From positions 1 through 64,000 of IMG/VR virus record IMGVR_UViG_3300035070_002626: a DNA stretch of 64,000 nucleotides. One strand, given 5' to 3'. A program made the translations under genes and the position numbers. Below, piece by piece: positions 4,600 to 63,159 of the stretch; position 1 is the first letter of the stretch; every line of letters starts with the position of its first letter. The notes under the pieces are model-generated. The model saw only the letters and a list, made by a program, of their open reading frames with translations, made no database searches and had not been told where the DNA came from.

Positions 4600-5771
4600 T
4601 TTAATTTTCCTAATATTGTTTCTAATCTATTGGCTTTGCTAGCCAAGAATAACTGTTGATTGTGCAGCAAATCTTCTTTACAATCTATATACATTTGATG
4701 TATTTTTTTAGATTTTGCAATTCGTTCCATTTCGTTGCACACTGCATTCCAGCGCTCAGTGTTGTTAGCAATGTTGTCATAGCTGTGATCAACCACATGA
4801 TCGAATGTCTTGTATCCCATGTCACGTAACTGTTGTATACTACCAGCGGCACCAACAATTACAAATGGCTGTGCATGCTTAATAGGTTTAAATGTTTTTT
4901 CTGTTAAGAACACACCATTGCTTTGATCTACATCTAAATGTGTTTCAATTACAAAATTAAAGTATGCATCGTCGTGATGTGCTGCCACAGTGTGATGGTA
5001 CAAATTATGTTCGTTGCTGCTCAACAGGTCAGCATGGAACGGGCATAGCTTTAAAAAGAATTCGGTGTGATGTCTAAGGCTACCAAAGCTATCAACTTCG
5101 ACTGGATTATCTTCTGGTAAATCACCCACACTAATATCAGCATTGTAACTAAAGAATCCTTTTTCGTGCAACCCTTTCATCCACAGTCTGGTCATTGTAT
5201 TAGCCCGCCACCATTTGTGTGTGCGCACAAGTGCAGTAAAATTTTTACTGCGTGGACGGTCATGGAATTCAGTTGCTAAACCTTCATTACGGAGCCGGTA
5301 TAACAGCTCGTCGTCACATAAGTAGCTGAATTGTGCAAGATCATGGCTTTTAGTGTTTGCGGTGGTAAAATGCAGGTTTTCTGGCGAAATGCCTGCTGTA
5401 ACCATTTGTTTTTTAATATGTTTTTTTATGCGAAAAGGGTTATCTCCTTCGCTGTAGAAAAACCAAATTTTTAGTTGGTTGTCTACGAGACGTTTTACAA
5501 CGTTTTTTGGGATAATATCAAACCATTCCACAGTGAAATCAAAAAAGCTAAGACTAATTGGATATATGCTGCCATTGGGTGCATCATCAGTTTTGACCAC
5601 AGTGTAGTCAATGCCTTCTTGTTTTAGATATTCGTAAAAATGCACTGGTTCGCTAAACGGGCTGTTCAAACTAAATTTGCGCCATTCTGGTGTGTACGGA
5701 GCTGCATCCCAAGTAGCACAGTTAGGAAAAGGCACATCGCCTTTAAATTGATCTGCACAAAATGTTACCAT
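4596..5771 (-). CDS. Putative glycosyltransferase-like protein ('ET..TEK..KPI..PF' family)
   Basis: C-terminal VIET...FLTEKTFKPI...QPF...GYKTF...SYD, reminiscent of the GT-B/GT10 donor-binding motif; start chosen at the ATG overlapping the upstream stop. Confidence 0.5.
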   Translation of the reverse strand: MVTFCADQFKGDVPFPNCATWDAAPYTPEWRKFSLNSPFSEPVHFYEYLKQEGIDYTVVKTDDAPNGSIYPISLSFFDFTVEWFDIIPKNVVKRLVDNQLKIWFFYSEGDNPFRIKKHIKKQMVTAGISPENLHFTTANTKSHDLAQFSYLCDDELLYRLRNEGLATEFHDRPRSKNFTALVRTHKWWRANTMTRLWMKGLHEKGFFSYNADISVGDLPEDNPVEVDSFGSLRHHTEFFLKLCPFHADLLSSNEHNLYHHTVAAHHDDAYFNFVIETHLDVDQSNGVFLTEKTFKPIKHAQPFVIVGAAGSIQQLRDMGYKTFDHVVDHSYDNIANNTERWNAVCNEMERIAKSKKIHQMYIDCKEDLLHNQQLFLASKANRLETILGKLK

Positions 5772-19650: not shown

Positions 19651-20844
19651 TTAGAAAATTAATTTTGCAAATTCAGGAAAAGTTTTTTGAAAGTTTTCTT
19701 TGCGAATTTGATCCAACGCCCCGTTTACTTCTAGAAATTTGTCCCATTCGGCAGGATCCCTAGGTTGTTGGATAACATTAGTCAAGTCTTGGAATTCTTC
19801 GTCTTGACTGAGTTTTTCTATCACGGCTGTCTTTACCGATTCAGGCATGTTTTTAATAAACAAGTATGCCGGCTCGACCAGCAAATTCCAGTACGGTGGC
19901 AATGGCAGAATATTCATGATAGCTGCTTTAATTTCGGGTAGATAGAAAATGTTTAATACACCTACAGTGCAGATACAATCAATGTAGTATTTTACATTAT
20001 GCTCTTCAAAATATTTTTTCCAATCTGCGATATTGTTCTTAACAACTTCGTATTTTAACCCATGACGTATGTATTCAAAATGATCAGCAATACCGTCGAT
20101 GCTTACACCAATTTCAACTTCTTGGAAATGTTTAATATTTGGTATTTTGTGCACAATGTTAACACTGCCATTGGTATTGATGTATAATACAATATGAGAT
20201 GAGTGTCCAGTCTTTACTAATTGTTCAAGAAGTTTGATTACTTTTTTATTATACATAGGCTCGCCGCCGAATAATTCAAGACGCTTTAACCCAGGAGCCA
20301 TGTTGAGTATTTCTTCGAGTTGATCATCTGACCAATTTGTTGCAGCCTGATTGGTTACATAGTATTCTTTCCCGGTAAGTTTTTTTAGTTTTACGCTATC
20401 GGCTATCCAGCGATTGCTATCACCTGGATGACACACTCTACATTTAGCATTGCATATGTTTCCATTCTTGATAGTCAACACCTCTGGGCCACTGAGATAG
20501 TCACCGCTGTTAACTCGGTTAATTAATTCGTCAGCATATGTCTCGGAATCAATAAAAGAGTATTCACTTGTTGAATTAACTGGATCAAACAATCGCTGCC
20601 GCAAGCTTTTTTTATTGTTTTCTTCTTCGTGCCAGCAGCGGTTGCACACAGGGCTTTTTTTATTGTTAATAAAGTCCTGGCGCAGTTGTTCAATTTCGCT
20701 GCTACGCCATTGCTCTAGTATGCTGTTGCCTGATGCTTTCCATGTTGTGCCACCAAGATACGGGCAAGGGGAAAAGCTAGTTGACGGATGTGTAGTGCAT
20801 TGTATAAACGGGGCTACACAAAAATTCTCCGTCAACTTTTTCAT
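19651..20844 (-). CDS. Radical SAM protein with N-terminal twitch/SPASM-like Cys motif
   Basis: FCVAPF..PC..C..C N-terminus; CNAKCRVC; GGEP; TNGS; SIDG. Confidence 0.85.
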   Translation of the reverse strand: MKKLTENFCVAPFIQCTTHPSTSFSPCPYLGGTTWKASGNSILEQWRSSEIEQLRQDFINNKKSPVCNRCWHEEENNKKSLRQRLFDPVNSTSEYSFIDSETYADELINRVNSGDYLSGPEVLTIKNGNICNAKCRVCHPGDSNRWIADSVKLKKLTGKEYYVTNQAATNWSDDQLEEILNMAPGLKRLELFGGEPMYNKKVIKLLEQLVKTGHSSHIVLYINTNGSVNIVHKIPNIKHFQEVEIGVSIDGIADHFEYIRHGLKYEVVKNNIADWKKYFEEHNVKYYIDCICTVGVLNIFYLPEIKAAIMNILPLPPYWNLLVEPAYLFIKNMPESVKTAVIEKLSQDEEFQDLTNVIQQPRDPAEWDKFLEVNGALDQIRKENFQKTFPEFAKLIF

Positions 20845-20862
20845 TATATCAACCTTGTATTT

Positions 20863-20937
20863 TGGCATCCCGTAGGGGAATCGAACCCCTCTTGACGGCT
20901 TGAAAAGCCGTAGTCCTAACCGATAGACGAACGGGAC
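20863..20937 (-). tRNA. tRNA-Glu(UUC)
   Basis: Cloverleaf; anticodon arm ACGGC-TTTTCAA-GCCGT; GTTCGATTC T-loop; encoded CCA. Confidence 0.93.
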
Positions 20938-21116: not shown

Positions 21117-21204
21117 TGGCAGACAGTGTGGGATTCGAACCCACGGAACCTTTCGGTTCGGCGGATTAGTAATCCGCTGCCTTCGACCACTCGGCCAACT
21201 GTCC
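21117..21204 (-). tRNA. tRNA-Ser with unusual ACU anticodon
   Basis: Class II cloverleaf with long variable arm; GCGGA-TTACTAA-TCCGC; G73; CCA. Confidence 0.88.
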
Positions 21205-21212
21205 ATTTATTC

Positions 21213-21287
21213 TGGCTCCGACGGTAGGGGTCGAACCTACGACCAATTGATTAACAGTCAACTGCTCTACCACTGAGCTACGTCGGA
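21213..21287 (-). tRNA. tRNA-Asn(GUU)
   Basis: TCCGACGTAGCTCAG...TTGA-CTGTTAA-TCAA...GTTCGAC...GCCA. Confidence 0.95.
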
Positions 21288-24104: not shown

Positions 24105-24239
24105 AATTAATGATTTTCTCGTGAGCAGGATTCTCTTTTGCTCAACGTATTAATTATGTAGACCTAACCTGTAAAAATGCAAAATCCAGCGATTTTGTAA
24201 TAAGATAAAATGAGAATGTCACATTGCTGCAACACTCTC

Positions 24240-24520
24240 TTGATCGTTCTGTTGCTAGGTGATCCACCCCGGGAGCCTAACTAGGCTGCCATTGCCATTT
24301 CTGGCGCTCTATTTGCGTTTGCATTTAGAAAGTTTGTTCGCGGTAACGGCGCTTACATCCCGGTAACTCCACTCTGCTATCTCGTCAGTCGATCCTAGTT
24401 CTGCCCCATCATAATTACTCTACGCCGTAAATTTGTAGTTTTTACGCTACAAAGTAATTATGGTGGAGCAGCGCGGTACTGCCCCGCGGTCCTGTCCGTA
24501 TTCACATCACTTCAACGTTA
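24240..24520 (-). ncRNA. ssrA: Two-piece (circularly permuted) tmRNA, alphaproteobacterial type
   Basis: Acceptor piece ends ...CGCGGGGCAGTACCGCGCTGCTCCACCA at 24461; intervening spacer 24408-24460; coding piece starts GGGGCAGAACTAGGATCGAC at 24407; tag ANANRAPEMAMAA* at 24322-24281; 3' CTAGCAACAGAA. Confidence 0.92.
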
Positions 24521-24527
24521 CAATCTA

Positions 24528-24556
24528 TTTATACACTAGTATTAGTTGTTTGTCAA
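24528..24556 (-). promoter_or_regulatory. Promoter for tmRNA
   Basis: TTGACA-N17-TATAAA. Confidence 0.7.
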
Positions 24557-24703
24557 CCTATTTTTTAAAGGTTCAATTGCTGCCGTTGCTTGACTGCGAT
24601 TCCAATTAAACTTCTTCATAGCATCAGCATATAGTTGTTCGTTGTCCTTGGATGCAACAATAAGTCCACGCAAGAAGTTATCTATATCAATCCAATTGTT
24701 CAT
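24542..24703 (-). CDS. Small hypothetical protein (53 aa, MNNWIDIDNF...)
   Basis: Translated by hand; ATGA overlap with the upstream gene. Confidence 0.55.
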   Translation of the reverse strand: MNNWIDIDNFLRGLIVASKDNEQLYADAMKKFNWNRSQATAAIEPLKNRLTNN

Positions 24704-29037: not shown

Positions 29038-29121
<84 letters not shown>

Positions 29122-29443: not shown

Positions 29444-29520
29444 TGGCGATCTCTGCAGGATTCGAACCTGCGACCTAGTGCTTAGAAGGCACTTGCTCTA
29501 TCCAGCTGAGCTAAGAGACC
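29444..29520 (-). tRNA. tRNA-Arg(UCU)
   Basis: AGTGC-CTTCTAA-GCACT; canonical D and T arms; CCA. Confidence 0.95.
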
Positions 29521-31136: not shown

Positions 31137-31211
31137 TGGAGCGGGTGATGAGATTCGAACTCACGACAACTTCGTTGGCAACGAAGAGCTCTACCACTGA
31201 GCTACACCCGC
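31137..31211 (-). tRNA. tRNA-Gly(GCC)
   Basis: CTTCG-TTGCCAA-CGAAG; U73; CCA. Confidence 0.95.
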
Positions 31212-34099: not shown

Positions 34100-35653
34100 T
34101 TAAAAATTTTGCTTTGAATGTGCCCATGGTTCAATGATATCAGCTGATAAACTGTTCTGTTCTCGATCAAACTTTACATTGTTAATCATAGTTCCAGTAT
34201 TATCTGTTAGTAGCTGAACTTCGTTCCAGCTACTCAGCAATTGCTTTGTATAGTTTGCTGCTTCGAAAACTGGATACCCCAATTCTTCAACATGTGATTG
34301 TAGGATAATCCTTCTCTTCAATCGTTCCTTGTATGTTAATGTCGGATTATCAACACAAACCCAATCATTAACATGATCATTGTCCTGCACTAGGTTATAT
34401 TTTTCTCTATCATCATATAATGGAGTGCGTTTTAATAGATTCAGTGTAAGTCCTAAATTTACTTCTTCGATTGTGCCGTTATCTAGATATGGCTTGTATC
34501 GAGTAAACATCTCTTTTGTTAAATCAAAATCTTCTATGGTCTCTGTAGGATACCCTACAATCATTAACATACGTACTTTGATCCCTACTCTATCTAGTTG
34601 GGAAATGCTGTAGTTAAGATCTTCTTCGCTATATCCCTTTTTCATGTGTTCTCTCACTGCCGGAGAACCGCTTTCGATTCCAACTAACATTGTACCTGCA
34701 CCAGCTGCCTTCATGACATCAAAGTCTTCGGGTGGCATCTGTTTTGGCCCACGTACAATAAAATGGGTGTCCCATATAAACTTTTTTTCTTCTGGTAGTG
34801 TTTTTCTGTATTCAGCTAACTCTAGAGTCATTTCCCTAAATGCTTTCATACTACCATTAATTAGACTATCTGTAAATCTAAATGCAGTTGCACCATATGC
34901 TTCAACTTGTTGACGCATTTCGTCAGCAATATTTTTGCCACTGCGATAGTAAAACTTTGGCCACATACTTGCAACATCACAAAATGTGCATTTTCTTACA
35001 CATCCTCTACTGCCAGTAATCGGCAATGCTTCCAACCCTTTGGAATTAGTGTAGGTTTTTAGTTCGTAGTCGTCATAATTGGGAAAAGCTAAACTATCAA
35101 CATCTACGATTTGCTGAGGAGGCTTGCCATTAATTCCAGGATAATCAATGTTTCCTTTAAGTAACTCGACTAATGCAAGTTCTCCTTCGCCCCGTATATA
35201 TGCGTCAATGATACGATTTTCGTGCAGAGACTCTGCAAATTTAAAATCTGTAGCAATTCCGCCGCCTCCGATTACAATTTTAATAGCAGGGTTGAGCTTT
35301 TTAATTGCAACAGATAGTAAGCGAGTTGCTCGTTGACTATTATAACTAAACACACTCATACCAACCCATGTTGGATTTTGATTAACAATTTTTTCGGCCC
35401 ACGATTCGATAACAGGAGCTAATAATTTCCATGTTTTATTATTATAGAATGTGTGATAAAAAAAGAAGTTGTCAATGGCGTTATGTAGTTCGTGATTATG
35501 AAACTGCTGATCAATTTCGGCATTAAGGTCAAAGATAATACTACTAAATCCGTGTGCAGATAAACTTCCCTTTAGCAATGCTGCTCCTGCTGGAGTATAC
35601 CCAAAATCGTCAACGATTCTCGGCGGTATTACTAACACAATATCTTTATTCAT
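34100..35653 (-). CDS. B12-binding radical SAM enzyme (class B methylase-like)
   Basis: N-terminal cobalamin-binding fold (GMSVF, IVIGG, GEGE); SRGCVRKCTFC; GIESGS; IVGYPTET. Confidence 0.88.
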   Translation of the reverse strand: MNKDIVLVIPPRIVDDFGYTPAGAALLKGSLSAHGFSSIIFDLNAEIDQQFHNHELHNAIDNFFFYHTFYNNKTWKLLAPVIESWAEKIVNQNPTWVGMSVFSYNSQRATRLLSVAIKKLNPAIKIVIGGGGIATDFKFAESLHENRIIDAYIRGEGELALVELLKGNIDYPGINGKPPQQIVDVDSLAFPNYDDYELKTYTNSKGLEALPITGSRGCVRKCTFCDVASMWPKFYYRSGKNIADEMRQQVEAYGATAFRFTDSLINGSMKAFREMTLELAEYRKTLPEEKKFIWDTHFIVRGPKQMPPEDFDVMKAAGAGTMLVGIESGSPAVREHMKKGYSEEDLNYSISQLDRVGIKVRMLMIVGYPTETIEDFDLTKEMFTRYKPYLDNGTIEEVNLGLTLNLLKRTPLYDDREKYNLVQDNDHVNDWVCVDNPTLTYKERLKRRIILQSHVEELGYPVFEAANYTKQLLSSWNEVQLLTDNTGTMINNVKFDREQNSLSADIIEPWAHSKQNF

Positions 35654-35687: not shown

Positions 35688-35763
35688 TGGTGCCCCAAGA
35701 GAGACTCGAACTCCCGACCTACTGATTACAAATCAGTTGCTCTACCAGCTGAGCTATTGGGGC
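35688..35763 (-). tRNA. tRNA-Thr(UGU)
   Basis: ACTGA-TTTGTAA-TCAGT; CCA. Confidence 0.95.
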
Positions 35764-40249: not shown

Positions 40250-40632
40250 TTTACTTCTGTGTATCCGTCTCCGAGATCACGCTCTCTTGTAAAGCGTACT
40301 TCAGGATCTGCTTGGAATTGTTCGTATGTTTCCATAACAACATTACGGCATACATTTTGAAACCAGCGATCAACAATTTCGTGGTCAGGTTCATTTGGTT
40401 GTCCTTGGTAACCAGCCCTTACAAGATTTGCTATAAACTTTTCATTCCAGTCAAGTTCAAATGCGCCCTGGTCGATGTCACCTTCGGCAAGTTCCATGCT
40501 TAGTATAGCAACATAAGGCTCGCCCTTTTCAGTGGCAATCTCTTTGTCAGTTTTAGTTACTTTCTTGGGTTTAACAGCAGGCTTAACTTCTGGTTTTGTT
40601 AAGCCTAGTGTCTTTTTAAATTTATCAAACAT
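40246..40632 (-). CDS. Hypothetical phage protein
   Basis: AAGGA RBS before MFDKF; FELDWN..F motif. Confidence 0.65.
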   Translation of the reverse strand: MFDKFKKTLGLTKPEVKPAVKPKKVTKTDKEIATEKGEPYVAILSMELAEGDIDQGAFELDWNEKFIANLVRAGYQGQPNEPDHEIVDRWFQNVCRNVVMETYEQFQADPEVRFTRERDLGDGYTEVK

Positions 40633-41395
40633 GCGTGTTCCTTTTAAATACTGGGATAGGCTGCATCTTATGCAAATTGCGTTTGCGAATCTCAAGATAT
40701 TGTTTTACTTGAGTTTTGTCCTCTTCGCCAAGCGACTCAACATCAATACCTTGCTCGTCAATGTCCATGCATTTTTCTAAATCACTGTAGCTCATGCCAT
40801 GCAATTGATCCTCATCAACACGCCCATCATCCCACAATCCATCTGTGGGTTTGGCATCGATAATTTCTTGGCTAACTCCAAGTTGTTTACCTAATGCCCA
40901 TACTTCAGTTTTTGTTAAGTCTGCAATTGGAGAGATATCAACTCCCCCGTCTCCGTACTTAGTGTAAAAACCTACTCCAAAGTCTTCTACTTTGTTGCCT
41001 GTTCCGACTACAATACCGCCATGCGTTTGCGCTTTTTGATACAATGTCATCATGCGTAATCTGGCACGACTGTTTGCTAGTGCTAGTGGGGAATAAGCAT
41101 GTTGAAACAAGTCTTCAAACTTCTCGAATACATCTGTAAGATCGATTGTTTCAAAGCTGGCGTTCATGTACTGTGTGTTTAGGCGCAAGCAATGATCAAC
41201 ACCCAAGTCTGTTTGCTCTGCTTTTTGTCGAATTGGCATAACCAAGCACAACGTGGGCACACCGGATAACGCACACAGTGTACTGACAACAGCACTGTCA
41301 ATTCCGCCACTAACACCAACTACTAATTGATCAATCCCGTTTTTAAGTGCATATTCTCTAATCCATTGCGGAATATCTTTTGTTAAATCACTCAT
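40625..41395 (-). CDS. nadE: NH3-dependent NAD+ synthetase
   Basis: GVSGGIDS PP-loop, NSRARLRM, GTGN..E, GFYTKYGDG, PTDGLW, DEDQL. Confidence 0.92.
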   Translation of the reverse strand: MSDLTKDIPQWIREYALKNGIDQLVVGVSGGIDSAVVSTLCALSGVPTLCLVMPIRQKAEQTDLGVDHCLRLNTQYMNASFETIDLTDVFEKFEDLFQHAYSPLALANSRARLRMMTLYQKAQTHGGIVVGTGNKVEDFGVGFYTKYGDGGVDISPIADLTKTEVWALGKQLGVSQEIIDAKPTDGLWDDGRVDEDQLHGMSYSDLEKCMDIDEQGIDVESLGEEDKTQVKQYLEIRKRNLHKMQPIPVFKRNTHV

Positions 41396-41467
41396 AATTG
41401 CTTTCTTACTTTTTCGTATTGCTCTTCGGTAATCTTTTTGCCTTTAATATAATTCATGTCTTCTTTG

Positions 41468-42364
41468 CTAAGTCCCCCAGGCATTTCCGAATAAACTAAT
41501 GTGGAGTCGGGGAGTGAATCTCCATCCTTCGTCCATACACGCTTGGGCAACGTCATTAACATTGAGGGAATATTCTTCACTGCGACCGCCCATTGGCATA
41601 AGATATACTGGACATTGTACCCCGGCACTTTGATAAGCACTGACAGCTTTTTTGACTTCAACAAAATCGTCTTGATCAGCGACAACAAACTTAAAATAAA
41701 TGTCACTACCGTCAACAAGGCTGTACTCATGAGCAACATTAGGTTTAATAGCATCTTCCCAAGATTCTCCCGAAACACTAAGTTTTGGGGAACAACTCCA
41801 AGTGACTGTAAAGTCGTCATTGTTGTTGAGATAGTTGAAGAAATCATCGTGTAGGTGTTGTGTAGTGTTTGTTTCAAATGTAACATTTTTCAAGTCCTGC
41901 ATACGTGGGTGTTCAAATAGTTCAACATACAATCGTTGCCAAGCAAGCAATGGTTCACCACCAGTTAAGATAAGATGAACGTCTTGTCCATTGTCTTGCA
42001 CCCACTTACCATTGGGAGTAAGCGATAATAGATGTTCAACTACTTCGTCAATTGTTGCTTCTTTGTTAAAGTGCTTAAACTCGGGATAGATACTTGCATA
42101 TGTATCACAACCTGTGTGAATAATAGGCAAGTCATTAAACTCCTTAGTTGTTTTATCAACGCCGGCGTCCAATAATGCTTTTACTTCTGCATTGTAACGC
42201 TGCCCGTTTGCATGTTTTTCTGCACGACTGGGCTCATCTTTGCCGAGGCCAAAGTTCATACAACGCAAGTTACAACCAAAGGTGCGTAGGAATACACTGG
42301 GTACTCCTACAAACTTGCCTTCGCCTTGCACACTATAAAATGCTTCACTATATCTTAGTTTCAT
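41468..42364 (-). CDS. queE: 7-carboxy-7-deazaguanine synthase (radical SAM)
   Basis: FYSVQGEG, FLR.FGCNLRC...CDT, LTGGEP, FETN, SPK, RLH..LFG. Confidence 0.92.
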   Translation of the reverse strand: MKLRYSEAFYSVQGEGKFVGVPSVFLRTFGCNLRCMNFGLGKDEPSRAEKHANGQRYNAEVKALLDAGVDKTTKEFNDLPIIHTGCDTYASIYPEFKHFNKEATIDEVVEHLLSLTPNGKWVQDNGQDVHLILTGGEPLLAWQRLYVELFEHPRMQDLKNVTFETNTTQHLHDDFFNYLNNNDDFTVTWSCSPKLSVSGESWEDAIKPNVAHEYSLVDGSDIYFKFVVADQDDFVEVKKAVSAYQSAGVQCPVYLMPMGGRSEEYSLNVNDVAQACMDEGWRFTPRLHISLFGNAWGT

Positions 42365-42987
42365 TTCGATACCTCTTCGTTTGGATCCCAACGTTTCCAC
42401 CATTCTTCCCACGGAAATACTATCCAAGACGGGTCGTCGATTTTATTAATTTCTTCAGCGCAATATCTAATAGGTAATTTGCTTTCACTTGCAGTATTAT
42501 CATACAGCACAGCAACTCGTACTGTGTTCTCCCACACAAGATTCCACAACTGTTCGCTGTTGTCTCGACTAGGAGAACAATTGGCTTCCCAATCTTGCTT
42601 GATCCAGTTCAGCGTAGCACCACTGTCGTTAATATCGTCGACAATAAGGATTTTCTTTTTAAGAGATGGATCCCATCGTGCGCCAGACATACCAGTTTTA
42701 GTTTCATCATTGTAACCAAACGCTTCTTCGGCCATCCAGCAGTTACTTTCGCAATCTTCTGGTTTACCATCCCGCAACCGTACATCCAATGTGTGCATCT
42801 TAACATCGAGATACTGACTTATTAAGTTTGCAACTGTTAAGCCACCACGTGTAATACCGACAACATAATCTGGTTGCCAATTGTCAATTTGCATTTGTCG
42901 CAATATGTCTTGAGTTTGCCGTTGCACATCATGCCATGTTACAAATACTTTTTTCACACTTTTCTCGCTTTTACCATCATATGCCAA
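42361..42987 (-). CDS. Type I phosphoribosyltransferase (xanthine/guanine PRT-like)
   Basis: GITRGGL, LIVDDINDSGAT PRPP loop, WIVFPWE. Confidence 0.88.
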   Translation of the reverse strand: MAYDGKSEKSVKKVFVTWHDVQRQTQDILRQMQIDNWQPDYVVGITRGGLTVANLISQYLDVKMHTLDVRLRDGKPEDCESNCWMAEEAFGYNDETKTGMSGARWDPSLKKKILIVDDINDSGATLNWIKQDWEANCSPSRDNSEQLWNLVWENTVRVAVLYDNTASESKLPIRYCAEEINKIDDPSWIVFPWEEWWKRWDPNEEVSK

Positions 42988-43730
42988 CCCAGGTATTCGT
43001 TAACTGCTTCACGCATTTCCTCGCTCATAGCAGCAAACCAGGGTTCTAACACATAGTTTCCCTTCTTGTACTCTTCTATATTATACATGAAACAGTGGCT
43101 TTGGCGCAACCTTTCAATTGTCCATTTTGTAGTAGGCAACAACTCATATATCTCGTCTTTGCTATATGCTTGTGCATAAGGACACGCATCTTGTGCTTCG
43201 TATTGATCCAGACCTTTTTGTATCATTGCCATTTTCCAAGAGTTTTTAGCATATACCAAAAGACGCAGTTCGCCGCCGTCAACTAGTGCATTGTGCATGT
43301 TGTTCAAGCTCAATTCAATGTCTGGAAAATGGTGTATTACTCCCATGCTGTATACAAAGTCAAATTTACCAAGATCGCTAAGGTCATCCTGTACATTACG
43401 CACATGAAACTCTCCGGGTAATCCTAGTACATCAAATCTCTGTTTACAAAGATCGATGCTTACACTAGAAAGATCAATGCCTACATATTCAGCTCCGTGT
43501 TTAGCAAATTCTTCAGCTTCGGTTCCAATGCCTGATCCTACTTCAAGTACTCGTTTTCCTTGCCATTGGTGATATCCAGCAAATTCACGTAGGTGCGGCT
43601 CGACTTTAAATCGTCGCTTGCTAACTTCGGCAAAAAACTCTTTAGTACCAACAGGGCTTGTGCCATGATTGATATTACACGGCTGAGCATTCCAGTAATC
43701 TGCAATGCGTTGTTTTAAATCACTGCTCAT
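42954..43730 (-). CDS. Class I SAM methyltransferase
   Basis: VLEVGSGIG, GIDLS, FDFVYS.GVIHH. Confidence 0.88.
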   Translation of the reverse strand: MSSDLKQRIADYWNAQPCNINHGTSPVGTKEFFAEVSKRRFKVEPHLREFAGYHQWQGKRVLEVGSGIGTEAEEFAKHGAEYVGIDLSSVSIDLCKQRFDVLGLPGEFHVRNVQDDLSDLGKFDFVYSMGVIHHFPDIELSLNNMHNALVDGGELRLLVYAKNSWKMAMIQKGLDQYEAQDACPYAQAYSKDEIYELLPTTKWTIERLRQSHCFMYNIEEYKKGNYVLEPWFAAMSEEMREAVNEYLGWHMMVKARKV

Positions 43731-44556
43731 ATTTCCAAGTTCCTAAAAATCCTTGAGGGTCGTTTTCTCTCATGCGTGTCCAGACGTCATACCCGCCTTT
43801 ACGTGCACCATCTAAATATCCATTGTCTTGACCAAGTCGTTTGCGGAACCATTCCATTTTGTAACCCCATAGAATCCTTGTTTGCGCAGTCGGGGGATAA
43901 AGAAAATCCTTGGGGTTAGACATGTCGCCTTCGAGTCGTTCTGGCTGTCGCTCTGCATATGTTTCGTCGTCGTTGTTGCCAGTTAAGTCAGCTCTGTCGT
44001 GGATGCACTCGCTTTTGAGTTGAATCATTGCATCACATATATATGCTACTTGACTAATCCATCCGTCGGTAATAACATGCGGAGATACACAGCCAAAAAG
44101 TATCAACCAATCTCGGGGAATAACCGGAAAGATAGCATATGGATGACCGTGATTATCTGAGAATCTTTGTACTGCAAATTGCCCTGAATGGCTGAGAATT
44201 TCAGTGTCCCATCCCTTGCTCACCATTATAGCATCATCATTCCAAACACACAGCCATTCGCCTTTACTATGCTGGGCTAATATATTAGTGTATTCGTTTA
44301 GTCGATGATATCCCATGCGAGGTTGTGTAAACACATACAGATCTAAATCTGCTTCTTCAAAATATGGAATCATGTCACTTTCAACATAGTCAATAGTTTT
44401 TTGATCATCGTCATCAATTGCAATCATGAATTCAATATCATGCGGGTTATCAGCAGTATCAATCATGCTCTGCATACTGCTCAATGCTTGTACTGGTCTC
44501 CCGCGAGTTGGGAACATTACAGATATTTTCTTACTTGGATTAATTTGAAATGTCAT
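43720..44556 (-). CDS. GT2-like (GT-A) glycosyltransferase
   Basis: ISVMFPTRGR, IDDDD, WNDD (DxD-like). Confidence 0.75.
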   Translation of the reverse strand: MTFQINPSKKISVMFPTRGRPVQALSSMQSMIDTADNPHDIEFMIAIDDDDQKTIDYVESDMIPYFEEADLDLYVFTQPRMGYHRLNEYTNILAQHSKGEWLCVWNDDAIMVSKGWDTEILSHSGQFAVQRFSDNHGHPYAIFPVIPRDWLILFGCVSPHVITDGWISQVAYICDAMIQLKSECIHDRADLTGNNDDETYAERQPERLEGDMSNPKDFLYPPTAQTRILWGYKMEWFRKRLGQDNGYLDGARKGGYDVWTRMRENDPQGFLGTWKYEQ

Positions 44557-45173
44557 TATCGTTTCTCTATAATTTTATCAGCCAAGCCCCATTCAACTGC
44601 TTCTGCCGCAGTAAGGAATGTATCAAACTTCATAGTCTCTGACATTTCGTCATATGTCTTGCCGGCTGTGTTGTGCTTAACGTAAAGCTCTGTAAGGCGT
44701 CGATTTACTTTTTTGCTCTCTTCCATGCTGCGTACTGCATCTTCAAACTGTAGCTCTTGGACATACACACTACCGCTTGTTCCACGTGTACCTGAGCTCA
44801 CACGGTGAATCATTGTTCGTGATTCTGGCAATACAATACGCTTGCCTGCTGCACCTGCTTGTGCAAGGAATGAGCCCATGCTGCATGCTTGTCCGATAAC
44901 TACTGTGGATACATCGCACTTGATAAATTGCATGGTATCGTAAATACCAAGTCCTGCACTTACCTGCCCTCCTGGGCTGTTAATATAAAGCAAGATGTCC
45001 TTGTCTGGGTCTTCGCTTTCTAAAAACAACAGTTGTGCAATAATTGCATTAGCCATATTGTCCTCAACTGGACCATTCAGCATGATAATACGATCTTTCA
45101 GTAATCGACTGTAAATGTCGTATGCACGTTCGCCTTTTGAAGTAGTTTCAACTACCATTGGAATTAAGGACAT
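44556..45173 (-). CDS. clpP: ATP-dependent Clp protease proteolytic subunit
   Basis: [24 protein letters not shown] (Ser), MIH (His). Confidence 0.95.
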
Positions 45174-45649
45174 TATTCAGAAAACCTTTCTTTGCGTACA
45201 ATAAATGGTGTGTAAATTGCGCTGTTAGCACCGTGCTCCATGCACTCTGCAGATTCGCACCAACAACGATTGTCTGTTGCTTCTCTAATAAGTTTATCAG
45301 CAAACTTCCATGCGTGTTCTGCAAACTTTTCTGCACCCACTCCGTCTAGTACTGTAACTTCTGCTAGACCCATGTTTTCAAGTTCTGCAAACTTGTACAA
45401 GAACGGATCTTCTCTATCAATTACTGTCTTATGATCAAATGTATCTTCTAGCCATGCTTTAAGAGGTTTAAGTCCTCCAAAGTCAACGGCCCAGTTTTTA
45501 TTGTCTAGCTCGCTACATCCAAATGTAAACTTGAAACCCAAACTATATCCGTGTAAGAATTTACAATGTGAATGGTCTGCATGTGGTTGACGGAACACCG
45601 CTGAAAGTCCGATGTTGTGTCCGTAAGTTTTTGTTGAATAATGTGGCAT
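45173..45649 (-). CDS. queD: 6-carboxy-tetrahydropterin synthase
   Basis: [22 protein letters not shown]-terminal E...N.A. Confidence 0.9.
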
Positions 45650-45675
45650 TCTATTTTCCTTAATGTAACAGGTCA

Positions 45676-45708
45676 GAATGTTTTAAGACGGATGATCCTT
45701 CGACGTCT
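45676..45708 (-). promoter_or_regulatory. Candidate preQ1-I-like riboswitch upstream of queD
   Basis: AGACG-UCGAAGGAUCAUC-CGUCU-UAAAACAUUC: 5-bp P1, UCG...C loop, A-rich tail, possible GAA:UUC pseudoknot. Confidence 0.5.
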
Positions 45709-45718
45709 ATAATAGTTA

Positions 45719-46444
45719 TCAGTTCTTCCAGACGTGTGCAGAATAACCTTTACCATTGGTATCCCCGCCCTGATTGTCTAGTTCTTCTCCATTGTAAGAC
45801 ACACCGTCGATGATGTCTTCCCCGTTTGGATATTCATTGCAGTGGAACATCAGTTTCTTAGGATCAAATTCGCCTACTGTTTTGATGATAGCATCAAAAA
45901 AACTGCCTTTTTCACTGCTATACATTTGTAGTACGTATTCGCCTTGTTCTTCATACTCTTCACCTTCGCCCCAATCGGTGCCTTCAACCTCGTAATTGGT
46001 TTCCTCTTGCAACTTGTCAACTAGGTCGCTTACTTTGTCGTCAATTACATCAGCAACATGCTTGCTCATGTATTCATCACTGTCAACTTCGTTGATAATA
46101 AGATAAGCACTACTGTATTCAACTCCCATTTGGTGACAAAACTCATTAGGTGCTTCGTACCAAGGTGATTTAAATGCGGATTCGCCATATTCAGTTAGAA
46201 AGTCTGCTTCTTTCGGAATAGTTCCTAGTTCATCGTAATCACAATCGTCTGGATCATCATTGATCAGATACTCTACCAAGTCGCTGTCGTGATGCTCTTT
46301 TAAGTGTGCGTTCCAAAATTCATATGCTTCTTTGGTGATATTTATGTATGCTGCTTCACCACCATAACCTCCAATGCTAAGACGATAATATCGTGGGCCC
46401 TTGATAGTGTCAATTAGTTCTTCTTTTTGTTCAATACTAGCCAT
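45719..46444 (-). CDS. Hypothetical highly acidic protein
   Basis: GGGAG RBS before MASIEQK. Confidence 0.65.
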   Translation of the reverse strand: MASIEQKEELIDTIKGPRYYRLSIGGYGGEAAYINITKEAYEFWNAHLKEHHDSDLVEYLINDDPDDCDYDELGTIPKEADFLTEYGESAFKSPWYEAPNEFCHQMGVEYSSAYLIINEVDSDEYMSKHVADVIDDKVSDLVDKLQEETNYEVEGTDWGEGEEYEEQGEYVLQMYSSEKGSFFDAIIKTVGEFDPKKLMFHCNEYPNGEDIIDGVSYNGEELDNQGGDTNGKGYSAHVWKN

Positions 46445-46823
46445 TTGTATAACTCCCTGCGCCCGGAATAACATTGCGAACACCGCCAGTTGGGTCAGCG
46501 CAATCCCCTTCACGACGGAAAATTAAATGTACATGAGGATACATACAAGTTTGCCCGGCGCTCTCGCCTATGTTAATGCCAACATTGTATCCAGTGATTT
46601 CATTATTTTGTACTTGAACATTTTCGTGTCCCATGGTGCATGCATATTTGAAACACTTCATAATGCTATCCAGTGTAGCATCACGAGGTACAACAAGAGT
46701 ATGCCCAGGAGTAACCGGAAAACCATCGTTGAAAATTACAAAATCTCTAGTTTCAAACTGCACATTAGTCCAAGGTGCTCGACCTTCGGCTTGTGCTACG
46801 GCTAACGTATCTAGTCTATCCAT
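46437..46823 (-). CDS. HIT-family nucleotide hydrolase
   Basis: FPVTPGHTLVVP, GYNVG.N.G..AGQ...PHVHLI. Confidence 0.9.
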   Translation of the reverse strand: MDRLDTLAVAQAEGRAPWTNVQFETRDFVIFNDGFPVTPGHTLVVPRDATLDSIMKCFKYACTMGHENVQVQNNEITGYNVGINIGESAGQTCMYPHVHLIFRREGDCADPTGGVRNVIPGAGSYTNG

Positions 46824-46873
46824 TGTATTCTCCGTTGTGTATAGATTTATTGTACTATGTTTAATAGTATATG

Positions 46874-47746
46874 TCAACCTTTTTCGAGTAATCTGTGCAG
46901 TGACTTAGAATCAGTAGGAAAAATATTTAGGCCATCACATCGTATTTCGTAACCCAAAGATCGCAATCGTTGTTGTACAATTGAAGCAGCAACTATGTTT
47001 AGTTCTTTCCAACTAAACGCAACATCGTTAATAGTATTATCAACGACAACATCTAACAAATTAAACTCGTCTATTATATATTGTTGTTTTTTTATCCACT
47101 CTTCGACGAACAAATCTATGTCGACCATTGCTTGTGCATTGCAAAAACTAAAAATACGGGTGATAGCATCTTTGGTCTGAAATAACATCTCAGTAGTGGA
47201 TATTTTTAAAAAACTATCTGGTACTTCGTATTTTGAATTAATCCATTGTTGCACGTATGTAACATAAAACAAACTCATCCACTCTCGCCATTCCCAGGGT
47301 TGCATTTGACTCCAGTGTGTATACTCGCTGTTCCATTTTACAATATCACATTCATTTCCAATGGCAAATGTTTCGAGACCTAGCTGACGCCTTTTCCCTA
47401 CTGCAATTTTATGATACTGGAACAATAAGTTGAGTTCGGCTGCCCGTAATGATTCTGCATATATTAATATATTTTTACTAGAGGGGGTAAGCGGATACGT
47501 TTCTAAAATTTTAGAAAGGGTCCCGTCTCTGGTTGGATATATAGGAGTGGCTATTTCTGCGTCTATGGTTTGATTATAAGCCGACATACTAAGTGGATGC
47601 CAAGATTTTGCAAACCCGTGAACAGAACCGTCGGGTTGTAAACCACGATCCAACAGTTCCGGATTTGTAAAATTATTACTAAACTCTCTCAGTATATACT
47701 CAACTGTTGAGCCAAACATACCTGGCACAAAAAATATCGAGATCAT
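46874..47746 (-). CDS. Hypothetical protein, AT-rich insert
   Basis: Long ORF; no recognised motif. Confidence 0.6.
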   Translation of the reverse strand: MISIFFVPGMFGSTVEYILREFSNNFTNPELLDRGLQPDGSVHGFAKSWHPLSMSAYNQTIDAEIATPIYPTRDGTLSKILETYPLTPSSKNILIYAESLRAAELNLLFQYHKIAVGKRRQLGLETFAIGNECDIVKWNSEYTHWSQMQPWEWREWMSLFYVTYVQQWINSKYEVPDSFLKISTTEMLFQTKDAITRIFSFCNAQAMVDIDLFVEEWIKKQQYIIDEFNLLDVVVDNTINDVAFSWKELNIVAASIVQQRLRSLGYEIRCDGLNIFPTDSKSLHRLLEKG

Positions 47747-48445
47747 TTACTTTCCACAGGAAAACTCTTGTTGCAATTTGATGTTGTCAAAGAATTCTTT
47801 CTTTGTACCAGAGTCTTCCCTGAAACTACCTTTAAGCACAGTTGTTTGGGTAAGACTACTACTCGCCATAATGCCGCGATTCTCACAACAACCGTGTGTT
47901 GCTTGGATATACACACCCAGGTTTTCTGCACCGGTGGCGCTGGAAATCTCCCGTGCAATATCATTTGCAAGTTCTTCTTGTAGAGTTCCACGCCGAGCGC
48001 ACCATTGTGCAATACGTGTGTACTTGCTGAGTCCAATAAGTTTATCAGCAGCAATAATACCAATGTATGCTACACCGCTTACTGGCTGGTGGTGATGACT
48101 ACACATGCTCTTTAGCTCACTGCGCACTACTAGCATACCTTCATAGCGATCGTCGCTGTCATTGGGAAATGCAGTTGCACTTGGCATAGGATCATAACGT
48201 CCTGCCATGATCTCGTTAAAGTACATCTTAGCCAGTCGACGTGCAGTGCCGTGTGAGTTAGGGTCGTTCTCTCGATCAATCAACAGTGTGTCGAGCACAC
48301 CTTCAAACGCTGTAGTAGCCTCGTTAATCAAATCTTCTTTAATGTTAGGTGTAATATAATCTGAAATATTATCGCCGGCCCAGTATCGTTTGCCTTCTGC
48401 TGTCATATTATCACGCAGAATTTGCGATGTTGTTTTGTTTGTCAT
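47747..48445 (-). CDS. folE: GTP cyclohydrolase I
   Basis: T.RR.AKM, SMCSHH, IGLSK..R, LQE, H.C...RG. Confidence 0.95.
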   Translation of the reverse strand: MTNKTTSQILRDNMTAEGKRYWAGDNISDYITPNIKEDLINEATTAFEGVLDTLLIDRENDPNSHGTARRLAKMYFNEIMAGRYDPMPSATAFPNDSDDRYEGMLVVRSELKSMCSHHHQPVSGVAYIGIIAADKLIGLSKYTRIAQWCARRGTLQEELANDIAREISSATGAENLGVYIQATHGCCENRGIMASSSLTQTTVLKGSFREDSGTKKEFFDNIKLQQEFSCGK

Positions 48446-48451
48446 TTGTTT

Positions 48452-48478
48452 CTCCGAGTTAGGGTCGTGGATGACCAC
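48452..48478 (-). promoter_or_regulatory. Candidate compact pseudoknot leader sequestering the folE RBS
   Basis: GGUC-AUCCAC-GACC-CUAAC-UCGGAG; loop UCC is complementary to GGA of the Shine-Dalgarno. Confidence 0.4.
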
Positions 48479-48488
48479 AATTGTTTAT

Positions 48489-48517
48489 ATTGTAATGTAT
48501 ATTTAGACAGATGTCAA
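48489..48517 (-). promoter_or_regulatory. sigma70-type promoter for folE
   Basis: TTGACA-N17-TACAAT, with a nested CTAAATA motif. Confidence 0.7.
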
Positions 48518-48518
48518 C

Positions 48519-49115
48519 TTAGTCGGTAATTTTTATTTTAGTGAGATCTGGATAAGTTACTTTTTGTGTATCTGGGTCTTTGAGTTGATTTGCGGCAAGC
48601 ATTTCTAATCCTTTAACACAATCTTCAATGGTAGGACGATAATGGTATCCAACTTGAAAGTTAATTTGGTCTTGCCAAGGACTTATACTTAAATCTCTGC
48701 CATCGTAACTAGCACGTTTCAGCCAATGATATTCTTCTTCGTTGTCCAACAAGATTGCGCCACCATGTCCTATTTCCAGTGTTTTGCTGTAACCAAAGCT
48801 CAAACACTGTTGTTGTCCTGGACGGTACATATCACGCTCAAAGCGTCTTGCACTGTCCCAAATATTTGTTGGAGAAATTTTATATTCCCCTTCCCAATCA
48901 TATTCGTCCATTGAGTATGGTATTGCAAGTTTATGAAATATCATTGGCACACTGAGATAAGTTCTTGTAGGAATTCTACATCTTAGTAGGAACCTTTGTT
49001 GCCGTCTCAAACACAATTCAATTGCATGTGTGCAGCAATCTGTTAATACAACATAAGGAGCGCCAGTGAATTTGCTTAGTGCTTGTTCGAATTCAGTAAA
49101 CTTAGTGAAGCTCAC
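48519..49115 (-). CDS. Short DegT-like PLP aminotransferase
   Basis: DCCTHA, TYLSV, WDSA, SF...K.L..G.GGAIL. Confidence 0.72.
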   Translation of the reverse strand: MSFTKFTEFEQALSKFTGAPYVVLTDCCTHAIELCLRRQQRFLLRCRIPTRTYLSVPMIFHKLAIPYSMDEYDWEGEYKISPTNIWDSARRFERDMYRPGQQQCLSFGYSKTLEIGHGGAILLDNEEEYHWLKRASYDGRDLSISPWQDQINFQVGYHYRPTIEDCVKGLEMLAANQLKDPDTQKVTYPDLTKIKITD

Positions 49116-50067
49116 GTGTATACCACTTCCATGCATGTTCAACAATATCATCAGTATGATATTCATTTTGCCAATTTGCTACTTCAAAAAACTTTTTGTT
49201 GTCAGCAACTAATATGTTAGGATCACCGTCACGCATAGGTCCTTCGATTATCTCACGGGGCTTGCTGTTAGATACTACACAACATTTGTTGATAATTTCT
49301 AGATTGCTAGCACCAAGTCCGGTTGATAGATTGTAAAATCCAGCTGTTACTCGATGTTCTGTTGCATAATAGTGCGCTTTGGCAATGTCTGCAACATGTA
49401 CATAATCACGCACACAAGTTCCGTCATCTGTTGGCAATCCTACACCATTGAGTGTAAACACCTGATTATCTCTAATAGCTTCCATTACTCGTGCAATGAT
49501 GTGTGTAGCTGACTTTTCTTGCCCGTGCCGCCCAAGTGGGTCTGCACCAGCAGCATTAAAGTAACGAAATCCAACATAGTTAATGCCATATGCATGACTA
49601 TATGTTTCCAACAGTTGCTCTACCATGTATTTGCTCATGCCATAAGGAGAGATTGGAAACTTGGGGTCGTCTTCATGTATAGGTGTTGCAATTGGATTTC
49701 CATACACCGCAGCACTACTTGAAAAAATAAACTTGCTGTGAATTTTGCGTTCTACCATATAATCCAACAACGTTTTAGTAGCAATAAAGTTGTTGTCATA
49801 GTATGTCTTTGGATCCATAAGACTGGGCCCAACTAAACTTGATCCTGCACAATGCACAATAGCATCTGGGCAATGGAAACTAAAACATTCTAAACCAGAA
49901 GGCGTTGCATATGATTCTTCGTAGTATGAGTCATACCATTGTACAAGGTGCGAACTCAACGGCCGGCGATCTATGCCAACAACTGTCCACCCTTGTTCTT
50001 TGAAATAGATTGCTGTTTGCCCACCGATGTATCCAGCAGCTCCAGTAATAATTACTGTTTTACTCAT
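49102..50067 (-). CDS. galE: UDP-glucose 4-epimerase-like enzyme
   Basis: TGAAGYIG, FSSSAAVYG, SPYG.SK, RYFNAAGA, DGTCVRDYVHV.D. Confidence 0.9.
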   Translation of the reverse strand: MSKTVIITGAAGYIGGQTAIYFKEQGWTVVGIDRRPLSSHLVQWYDSYYEESYATPSGLECFSFHCPDAIVHCAGSSLVGPSLMDPKTYYDNNFIATKTLLDYMVERKIHSKFIFSSSAAVYGNPIATPIHEDDPKFPISPYGMSKYMVEQLLETYSHAYGINYVGFRYFNAAGADPLGRHGQEKSATHIIARVMEAIRDNQVFTLNGVGLPTDDGTCVRDYVHVADIAKAHYYATEHRVTAGFYNLSTGLGASNLEIINKCCVVSNSKPREIIEGPMRDGDPNILVADNKKFFEVANWQNEYHTDDIVEHAWKWYTRELH

Positions 50068-62124: not shown

Positions 62125-63159
62125 TTATAATCCGGCAAACCATGTATCAGAAAAGTCTCTAACTTTAGCAAGTTCGATTTGTGCTGGTTCGTATTCAGGG
62201 TGCACAGGACTAAACACATGATGGAAGTTGTATTCCTCAAGCGACCAAGAGCCCCACATTTGCAATTTAGAATATTCCACTATGTCTACATCAAATTCCT
62301 TGCAAAAATAGTAAAATGGTTCTATTTCTTGATAATTTTGCTGTTGTAAAATCATCCTGGTATGTAATTTAAAACCTAATTCATGTTTCTTGTTTTGTAA
62401 AAAATGCATTGCTTGTAGTAACTTTGGCCATTTCCCACCGCGGCGTATTTTTTCGTATGTGTCGGCTTGTGATGCATCAATACTTACAGTTATTTTGTTA
62501 ATGTTATTAACTTTGTTTCCGAATCGATGCCAGTTTTGTTCGCACAGCAACCCATTTGTACCAAAGTCAAATTCTACATTGGGAAATTTATCAATATCAA
62601 TTGAGTTTACAAAATCCATTAACATAGGACTAGCAAACACTTCACCTGCCCCGCCAAGTTCTATTTTTATTTTTTTATCTGTTGCGTCAGCAAACAAGTT
62701 GTTAGAAAGAGTTTCGCCTAGCTTGCGCTGTTCTTCTTGTTTTGATAATGGAGTTTTTATAATATGACGTCGGCAGCTAGGACAACTTAGATTACAAGTT
62801 TGGTCCCCATTGAAACTAATATGATGAGGCATTTCAAATTTTGATGGATCGTCGAATAGTTCTCTTATGTTCGGCGGCACTGACTTGATCTTGTTTAGCC
62901 CGTTGTTAGCAATTACAGCACACCAATCTGCATCACAATAAACATAAGATCCATCAATGATACTTTGTCTAATTTTTTGTGCCAGTTCAGACGACAACAA
63001 TTCCTTTAGTGTGTTTTCTTTTAAATTTCCAATGGTAGTTGGCATCCATCGGTTACATCCACACATTCGAACATCGCCCTCTAGGGTAACCTCGATCATA
63101 ACAAATGGTGACAAACAGTACTTCCCTTGGTACTGTTTAGCCGGAAACATTTCAATCAT
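62125..63159 (-). CDS. Radical SAM protein with N-terminal SPASM-like domain
   Basis: YCLSPF..G.V..C, IGN; CNLSCPSCR; GE.FAS; TNG; SIDA...YEKIR.GG.W. Confidence 0.85.
   Translation of the reverse strand: MIEMFPAKQYQGKYCLSPFVMIEVTLEGDVRMCGCNRWMPTTIGNLKENTLKELLSSELAQKIRQSIIDGSYVYCDADWCAVIANNGLNKIKSVPPNIRELFDDPSKFEMPHHISFNGDQTCNLSCPSCRRHIIKTPLSKQEEQRKLGETLSNNLFADATDKKIKIELGGAGEVFASPMLMDFVNSIDIDKFPNVEFDFGTNGLLCEQNWHRFGNKVNNINKITVSIDASQADTYEKIRRGGKWPKLLQAMHFLQNKKHELGFKLHTRMILQQQNYQEIEPFYYFCKEFDVDIVEYSKLQMWGSWSLEEYNFHHVFSPVHPEYEPAQIELAKVRDFSDTWFAGL

Follow-up and report, generated by a model that had tools for sequence, protein, structure and literature searches.

A tiny predicted pseudoknot that folds onto the Shine-Dalgarno sequence of phage folE

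The folE leader of a marine giant phage

To establish whether the short leader of a phage folE gene could form an RNA structure that controls access to its own ribosome-binding site, we examined a 64,000-nt stretch of DNA (hereafter, the window) that forms the first 64 kb of the 299,910-b IMG/VR virus record IMGVR_UViG_3300035070_002626, which is estimated to be 86% complete. The record derives from a giant phage from the sea, as near-identical DNA is present in sequencing runs from at least 13 marine or seawater studies. No cultured relative was found: a megablast search returned nothing, and the nearest named FolE was that of Sinorhizobium phage Phosso (63%). A sequence-only reading of the locus had proposed that, between a sigma-70 promoter and the folE ATG, a minimal pseudoknot pairs loop UCC with GGA of the ribosome-binding site, that a GUGG/CCAC hairpin competes with it in a two-state translational switch on the first committed step of the pathway, and that the leader shares UCAUCC with the queD leader. 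All of these sequence elements are present on the minus strand, and the observation is therefore confirmed. The leader and its gene comprise the following features:

48512–48517 (minus strand): TTGACA, the −35 hexamer of the folE promoter; a TTGNNN hexamer is seen upstream of most related leaders.
48500–48506 (minus strand): CTAAATA box inside the 17-nt promoter spacer, conserved upstream of folE in relatives.
48489–48494 (minus strand): TACAAT, the −10 hexamer, followed by 12 nt; the predicted transcription start, inferred from the usual 6–8-nt spacing, is about 48481–48483.
48473–48476 (minus strand): GGUC, the 5′ strand of stem P1.
48467–48472 (minus strand): loop AUCCAC, in which A is L1, UCC (48471–48469) is the 5′ strand of P2, and A followed by an invariant C is the junction.
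48463–48466 (minus strand): GACC, the 3′ strand of P1.
48456–48462 (minus strand): L3, consisting of linker CU, then AAC, then UC.
48452–48455 (minus strand): Shine-Dalgarno (SD) sequence GGAG, in which GGA (48455–48453) is the 3′ strand of P2; AAACAA follows.
47747–48445 (minus strand): folE, encoding GTP cyclohydrolase I (232 amino acids), with the ATG at 48445–48443, 6 nt after GGAG.
48465–48480 (minus strand): alternative hairpin UUGUGG/CCACGA, an extension of GUGG/CCAC, which overlaps the loop and is lineage-specific.

The gene was identified by Pfam (PF01227, 3.9e-37) and NCBIfam (FolE) profiles, and no alternative genetic code was needed. The promoter is an 11-of-12 match to the sigma-70 consensus, and TTGACA-N16-18-TAYAAT occurs 5 times in the window against 0.14 expected. 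The box YCTAAATA lies within 140 nt upstream in 144 of 180 distinct motif loci, whereas in this genome the TTGNNN/YTAAATA/TAnnnT arrangement occurs at folE and at one weaker site only. Two marine metatranscriptome runs contain parts of the region, but only as contigs, one of which spans the promoter and leader, and these carry no information on the start site or expression.

Judged from this one sequence, none of the proposed structure exceeds chance. The fold z-score was −0.74, with 39 of 200 shuffles folding at least as well, and the minimum-free-energy fold preferred the alternative hairpin; the 14-mer spanning the hairpin has no other close copy in the window beyond chance; and a 6-mer shared between two leaders of 40–70 nt is expected about half the time.

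The element precedes folE in divergent phages

Conservation upstream of folE homologues had been named beforehand as the test of the idea, and we therefore turned to relatives. Comparison with them lifts the hairpin and the loop–SD pairing far above chance. A FolE-guided scan of viral contigs returned 80 loci with FolE 78–100% identical to that of the window, and their upstream regions revealed the same element in most of them, with different stem sequences; a strict pattern found it in 59 and a covariance model in four more. Two further FolE-guided scans, started from FolE proteins only 36–37% identical to that of the window, brought the tally sampled through FolE alone to 136 of 240 loci, and about 180 distinct sequences were collected overall. 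Pattern scans that ignored the downstream gene yielded 128 distinct stem-bearing hits, of which 123 are followed by FolE, one is cut by a contig end and four are spurious. In three loci a 130-amino-acid ORF of unknown function lies between the motif and an overlapping folE. FolE behind the motif ranges from 35 to 100% identity to that of the window, so that the RNA is far better conserved than the protein.

The nearest named FolE-bearing phages (Phosso, RHph_I1_18, Vibrio 2.275.O and NCTB) have no motif, and a blastn search with the 81-nt leader found only chance matches. In cellular genomes, the class-2 stem pattern gave 11 hits, of which eight are chance hits in coding DNA and three are real; all three lie on MAG contigs that carry the same promoter elements and FolE downstream, and we take them for mis-binned phage contigs. 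Motif-less relatives keep the same GGAG at the same spacing with no structure.

Across about 180 distinct sequences, P1 has four pairs, with a fifth in about a third of sequences. The closing pair is A-U in 92, C-G in 81, G-C in 5 and G-U in 1; the second pair is C-G in 94, A-U in 45 and U-A in 38; the third is G-C in 174 and C-G in 5; and the fourth is G-C in 87, U-A in 26, A-U in 25 and C-G in 19, with 11% mismatches. In a 53-sequence alignment the P1 covariation score was 0.456 against 0.107 in shuffles, with 0 of 500 shuffles as high and slid controls at 0.04 or less; in a 133-sequence alignment it was 0.509 against 0.133, again with 0 of 500 as high, and 0.10 or less when the partners were slid. 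The corresponding alignment counts are closing pair C-G 66, A-U 62 and G-C 4; second pair C-G 64, A-U 34 and U-A 33; third pair G-C 128 and C-G 5; and fourth pair G-C 53, A-U 22, U-A 22 and C-G 16. RNAalifold independently predicted the same four pairs, all with double changes.

In contrast to the freely varying stem, the loop A-U-C-C-N-C is nearly invariant. In 113 distinct sequences A1, C3, C4 and C6 are invariant and U2 is present in 112; position 5 is A (111), U (65) or C (3) in the larger set. Six nucleotides after the loop, in 168 of 179 sequences, comes A-(A/U)-C, in which the first A and the C are invariant, then an optional A, then the invariant U-C-G-G-A-G, and the start codon follows 5–10 nt later. 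No further covariation was found for loop position 5, or for the A/U in the tail, against any other column.

Covariation supports pairing of the loop with the Shine-Dalgarno sequence

In the FolE-guided sets the three proposed loop–SD pairs never varied, apart from two loci: L006, with loop ACCCAC and a normal SD, which is uncompensated, and L489, with loop ACCCUC and GGGAG in the SD region. The latter suggested a U-A to C-G exchange that keeps GGAG by adding a G. To test this, we first scanned metagenomes with a pattern that fixed class-2 stems and the ACCC loop but left the tail free to be GGAG or GGNAG. Of 35 distinct contexts returned, five are unrelated coding DNA and all 30 FolE-linked ones read GGGAG. 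In the pooled table of distinct leaders, AUCC occurs with GGAG in 150, ACCC with GGGAG in 29, ACCC with GGAG in 1 and AUCC with GGGAG in 0. On alignment A2 the variable pair is U-A in 116, C-G in 15 and other in 1. On a FolE tree of 188 proteins the state changes six times, and of five independent comparisons on supported branches four or five are concordant and none is discordant. We then predicted the same coupling in class-1 stems; two specific scans gave one real hit, a locus (L681) with FolE 72% identical, and it has GGGAG. Altogether, the loop U-to-C change comes with GGA to GGG in 30 of 31 distinct cases and in none of 151 other loops, at about 5 separate places on the FolE tree and in both stem classes. 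It should be considered that two of the three P2 pairs never vary and that the compensated set was gathered largely with patterns that fixed the loop change. A random sample of 120 hits from the reverse scan (normal loop with GGGAG) contained no real one, so that absence of this combination rests on those sampled hits plus the 240 FolE-anchored loci and is weak negative evidence only. Moreover, because the leader features lie within 25 nt of each other, exchange of whole leader cassettes between phages could inflate the count of independent changes. Even so, we consider the loop–SD helix supported.

A second coupling links the closing pair of P1 to the length of L3. Every leader whose closing pair is A-U has one extra A before U-C-G-G (96 of 96), and no leader with C-G, G-C or G-U has it (0 of 92). 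On the FolE tree both traits change 39 times together, and 16 supported independent comparisons are all concordant (p = 3e-5), although cassette exchange could also inflate these counts. Both forms occur in this one genome, so the rule is internal to the RNA. The simplest reading, which is an inference, is that the 3′ tail lies along P1 and contacts its top pair, as L3 does in H-type pseudoknots, supporting the same topology independently.

Position in the transcript and copy number

The stem begins 8–14 nt after the −10 hexamer in most loci, placing the motif at the 5′ end of the predicted mRNA. The knot is thus essentially the whole 5′ UTR, leaving no room for a separate or longer expression platform, and the aptamer-like part and the SD are the same nucleotides.

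The covariance model found two copies in the 300-kb genome: the folE leader (46.8 bits) and a second copy at 105544–105585, outside the window (44.2 bits). The latter has its own sigma-70-like promoter and precedes a 65-amino-acid single-helix membrane protein with no known link to the pathway, followed by ORFs of unknown function. This copy was part of the seed alignment of the model, so its score is not an independent result; it was first found by a separate stem-and-loop pattern scan. Nine of ten other contigs of 124–238 kb have one copy each, at folE. These copy numbers rule out a general phage leader or promoter module, and the element is folE-specific apart from the one odd second copy in this genome.

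The alternative hairpin and the queD leader

In the window, the alternative hairpin is computed at −6.4 kcal/mol against −4.8 kcal/mol for P1. However, the upstream complement that it needs is present in only 1 of 119 distinct sequences, the lineage of the window itself, and the minimum-free-energy fold contains P1 in 96 of 119. The hairpin may matter in this lineage, but it is not part of the conserved mechanism. UCAUCC occurs in the queD leader at 45695–45690, but that leader has no hairpin and no match to the covariance model at E ≤ 10, and the shared 6-mer is at chance level. The interpretation given by the sequence-only reading is therefore partly supported: the very small folE-specific pseudoknot whose loop pairs with the SD is supported by comparison, whereas the competing hairpin as part of the mechanism and the link to queD are not supported.

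Pathway context

The window encodes FolE, a QueD-like PTPS (45173–45649) and QueE (41468–42427; 79% to a relative's QueE). Next to them lie a phosphoribosyltransferase, a methyltransferase, a HIT protein and an NAD-synthase-like PP-loop enzyme. No QueC or TGT/DpdA family member was detectable here, and no convincing one in five related large contigs. The product is therefore probably a 7-deazapurine handled at the base-to-nucleotide level. Every intermediate from H2NTP onward keeps a guanine-like face, which an invariant cytosine at the P1/P2 junction could read; this inference is the basis on which we rank a riboswitch first.

Models for the folE leader

We propose that the first ~25 nt of the folE mRNA fold into an H-type pseudoknot made of the 4-bp P1, a one-base L1 (A), a 3-bp P2 between loop UCC and the GGA of the SD, a two-base junction (N then an invariant C) and a 7–8-nt L3 (N-N-A-A/U-C-(A)-U-C) that runs back along P1. 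When folded, it would hide the ribosome-binding site and so lower FolE translation. Because the unpaired bases are nearly invariant while FolE diverges to 35% identity, and because the element is tied to folE, the most likely mode is a translational OFF riboswitch, in which the knot would be stabilized by a small molecule with a guanine-like face made downstream of FolE: a 7-deazapurine such as CDG or preQ0, a nucleotide of one, or a pterin intermediate. The molecule would pair with the invariant C between P1 and P2, as preQ1 does in preQ1-I. Our analysis establishes the sequence, P1, the terminal pair of P2, the coupling of the closing pair to L3 and the gene association; that SD occlusion affects translation, that the element is a switch responding to a ligand or a protein, that any metabolite is bound, and which one, are inferred from conservation and gene association. 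We regard the pseudoknot fold as very likely real and regulation of folE translation as likely, but a small-molecule riboswitch as somewhat less likely than not, and the model as a whole as about as likely as not. The conserved, covarying structure in a 5′ UTR with a consistent gene association is what is expected of a riboswitch, but L3 is not A-rich and the loop is only 6 nt, so the preQ1-I pocket cannot simply be transferred, and the more stable hairpin computed in the window, the weak single-sequence z-score and the second copy before an unrelated gene also weigh against it.

Two other modes, each of which we consider unlikely, survive about equally well. In the first, the pseudoknot would be the operator of an RNA-binding protein, either FolE itself as an autoregulator, as with T4 gp32 or thymidylate synthase and their own mRNAs, or a conserved phage or host translational repressor that recognizes the invariant loop and tail bases and locks the SD away. 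Invariant unpaired bases (A1, C6, A-C, U-C) next to a covarying stem are also the signature of protein-recognized hairpins, there is only one copy per genome in the nine contigs above, the second copy in this genome would fit a regulon of a trans-acting factor, and phage leader pseudoknots used for protein autoregulation are established (T4 gene 32). However, a co-evolving protein partner would be expected to let the site drift, the coupling of the closing pair to L3 exists as two forms inside a single genome and therefore reflects an internal RNA constraint rather than adaptation to different proteins, and no RNA-binding domain was seen in the neighbouring genes scanned.

In the second, the pseudoknot would be a ligand-independent element: a constitutive damper of FolE translation, a temperature- or Mg-sensitive fold, or a 5′-terminal structure that protects the mRNA from 5′-end-dependent decay while keeping a strong SD. 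The position at the extreme 5′ end fits this view, small H-type pseudoknots with conserved loop bases can be held together by base triples alone, as in luteoviral frameshift knots, and the coupling of the closing pair to L3 is explained by tertiary packing without any ligand. Against it, a constitutive damper could be achieved by a weak SD, yet motif-less relatives keep the same GGAG without structure; restriction to folE among hundreds of genes per genome argues for gene-specific conditional control; and an invariant unpaired C flanked by a freely varying base at the helix junction is typical of a pocket.

The two-state switch with the GUGG/CCAC hairpin, coordinated with queD through UCAUCC, is very unlikely and already largely refuted as a conserved mechanism by the comparisons above. 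Least likely of all is an element acting on DNA, as a repressor operator or as a terminator for the opposite strand: although GGTC-N6-GACC is an inverted repeat just downstream of the promoter and was listed as terminator-like on the plus strand, its half-sites change freely while complementarity is kept and the non-palindromic loop is what is conserved, the opposite of a protein–DNA operator, all long ORFs in this stretch (about 37,800–63,200) lie on the minus strand, so that nothing here needs a plus-strand terminator, and the U-A to C-G exchange linking the loop to the SD 15 nt away has no DNA rationale.

If the fold and its regulatory role hold, this is a cis-regulatory RNA family found so far only in phage contigs, far smaller than almost all known riboswitch aptamers yet more conserved than the enzyme it controls, which would sharpen the question of how few nucleotides suffice for a specific pocket. 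It would give the first handle on how phages meter the GTP-consuming entry step of 7-deazapurine synthesis, a pathway that in other phages makes DNA modifications that defeat host restriction. With a sigma-70-like promoter and a 25-nt element, it would be accessible in E. coli and to chemical synthesis without the uncultured host, and would be a compact part for synthetic translational control. It is possible, though rather less likely than not, that this is a new riboswitch class and the smallest natural one so far, about 25 nt, with the aptamer and the expression platform being the same bases, confined to uncultured, mostly giant, aquatic phages and sensing a 7-deazapurine or pterin product, which would give the phage feedback control over GTP drain into its own nucleobase-modification pathway.

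Comparison with known systems

Searches of Rfam 15 gave no match at the motif, at the gathering threshold in the window or at E ≤ 10 in the window leader and 15 other loci, and literature searches found no prior description of this element; it is therefore probably a new, exceptionally small gene switch on the first step of 7-deazapurine synthesis.

The THF-II riboswitch (the 'folE motif', RF02977) likewise lies directly upstream of folE, masks the ribosome-binding site and has a simple architecture (PMC6800512). However, THF-II is a hairpin of about 55–60 nt with P1, P2 and an internal bulge and with the ribosome-binding site in the 3′ shoulder of P1, occurs in Rhizobiales chromosomes and senses folates, whereas here the whole leader is about 37 nt, the structure is a 4-bp hairpin plus a predicted 25-nt pseudoknot in phages whose FolE feeds QueD/QueE, and the Rfam model does not match.

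Minimal H-type pseudoknots stabilized by loop–helix triples, for example the luteoviral frameshift knot of about 26–28 nt, share the size class and proportions: a 4–5-bp S1, a 1–2-nt L1, a 3-bp S2 and a ~7-nt A/C-containing L3 lying in the S1 groove. The coupling between the closing pair and L3 seen here is what such triples would produce, but those knots act inside coding regions on elongating ribosomes, whereas this one lies at the mRNA 5′ end and contains the SD. The T4 gene 32 leader pseudoknot is also a phage mRNA 5′-leader knot used for translational control of the downstream gene; it lies well upstream of the ribosome-binding site and nucleates cooperative protein binding, whereas here the SD itself is a strand of the knot and no protein partner is known.

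The nearest in design is the preQ1-I riboswitch (RF00522), especially type III (E. coli yhhQ leader), which is likewise a minimal H-type pseudoknot in a 5′ leader with a one-base L1, P2 formed between loop pyrimidines and the SD, a 7-deazaguanine pathway context, and A-C or U-C with an invariant specificity cytosine before the 3′ strand of P1 (PMC11625349, PMC10622847), where our sequences have A-C (111), U-C (65) or C-C (3). In contrast, the loop here is 6 nt rather than 8–14 nt; the closing pair is mostly C-G or A-U rather than the G-C pocket floor that is invariant in all preQ1-I types (PMC10622847); the L1 uridine is replaced by an invariant A (113 of 113), the following U being a P2 base; L3 (N-N-A-A-C-(A)-U-C) has no A tract, holds only two or three A and has C rather than A before P2; and P2 reads UCC:GGA rather than CCU:AGG. 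The element is found in front of folE, not queCDEF, queT or yhhQ, only in phage contigs, and without a match to the preQ1 model. It would work like preQ1-I, but it is not a member of that family.

Promoter and leader variation upstream of folE

Within the spacer of the folE promoter we observed a conserved (C)CTAAATA box (window 48500-48506, minus strand), which in relatives is likewise found upstream of folE and lies within 140 nt upstream of the leader pseudoknot in 144 of 180 distinct loci. The box is also present in folE leaders that lack the knot, including that of phage Phosso. It resembles a T4-type late promoter (TATAAATA), but it is not a general promoter here. In this genome the TTGNNN / YTAAATA / TAnnnT arrangement occurs only at folE and at one weak site.

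Comparison of the related leaders revealed further variation around the element. In eight folE loci (L008-L010, L034, L060, L063, L074 and L075), an extra inverted repeat that includes the -10 hexamer (for example, GGTACAA ... TTGTACC) is present between the -10 hexamer and the knot and lengthens the leader by about 15-20 nt. In another folE locus, L482, an apparently decaying copy of the knot lies about 30-70 nt upstream of folE, where the loop reads AUCCAU, so that the junction C is lost, and the tail is degraded to ..AUCAUCAGAGAG.

Genomic contexts of the pseudoknot

In some relatives (loci L148, at 535-934, L158, L203 and L041/L043), a conserved ORF of approximately 130 aa (starting MQKFKSLEEI..) lies between the knot and folE and overlaps the folE start, an arrangement in which the knot would control a two-gene operon. 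The ORF gave no Pfam match. The only instance found that is not associated with folE is a second, class-2 copy of the knot in the same viral genome, located outside the window on the minus strand at G000:C1:105544-105585 (5545-5586 of locus L083). This copy consists of GGCA / AUCCAC / UGCC with the tail AUCAUCGGAG and has its own TTGACC-17-TATACT promoter. It precedes a 65-aa single-helix membrane protein, which is followed by 137-aa and 236-aa ORFs with no family assignment.

Contigs carrying the knot together with FolE were also identified in three metagenome-assembled genomes (loci L672, L674 and L678), which are labelled Haliscomenobacter, Crocinitomicaceae and Neomarinimicrobiota. Because these contigs contain the same promoter elements (a TTGACA/CTAAATA promoter in L672 and L678, and the TTGCAA/TAAAAT type in L674), we take them for phage contigs binned into bacterial genomes.

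Gene content of the window and the 7-deazapurine cluster

The following features were observed in the window:
19987-20463, 34511-35011 and 62314-62799, radical-SAM domain hits
20866-20937, 21120-21287, 29041-29121, 29447-29520, 31140-31211 and 35691-35763, tRNAs (seven genes in total)
24238-24573, minus strand, tmRNA
40625-48445, minus strand, 7-deazapurine cluster
48519-49166 and 49102-50067, minus strand, the ORF just upstream of folE and an NAD-dependent epimerase/dehydratase ORF

The tmRNA is of the permuted (alphaproteobacterial) type and, along with the seven tRNA genes, may hint at an alphaproteobacterial host. The ORF just upstream of folE matches only about 38 N-terminal residues of the DegT/DnrJ aminotransferase family and overlaps the end of the epimerase/dehydratase ORF by 65 nt. 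It may be a truncated or divergent sugar-aminotransferase. Together with five more sites elsewhere in the genome, the three radical-SAM sites in the window bring the total to eight radical-SAM domain hits in one phage genome. The Pfam model did not detect QueE itself, which was instead found by similarity.

The 7-deazapurine cluster has an unusual make-up, comprising FolE, an unknown 290-aa protein, a HIT protein, an unknown 264-aa protein, a QueD-like PTPS, ClpP, a glycosyltransferase-like protein, a methyltransferase, a phosphoribosyltransferase, QueE and an NAD-synthase-like PP-loop enzyme. Searches for QueC and TGT/DpdA found neither in this genome and no convincing one in five related large contigs. 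This composition suggests, by inference from gene content, nucleotide-level (toyocamycin-like) handling of the base rather than DpdA-type exchange in DNA.
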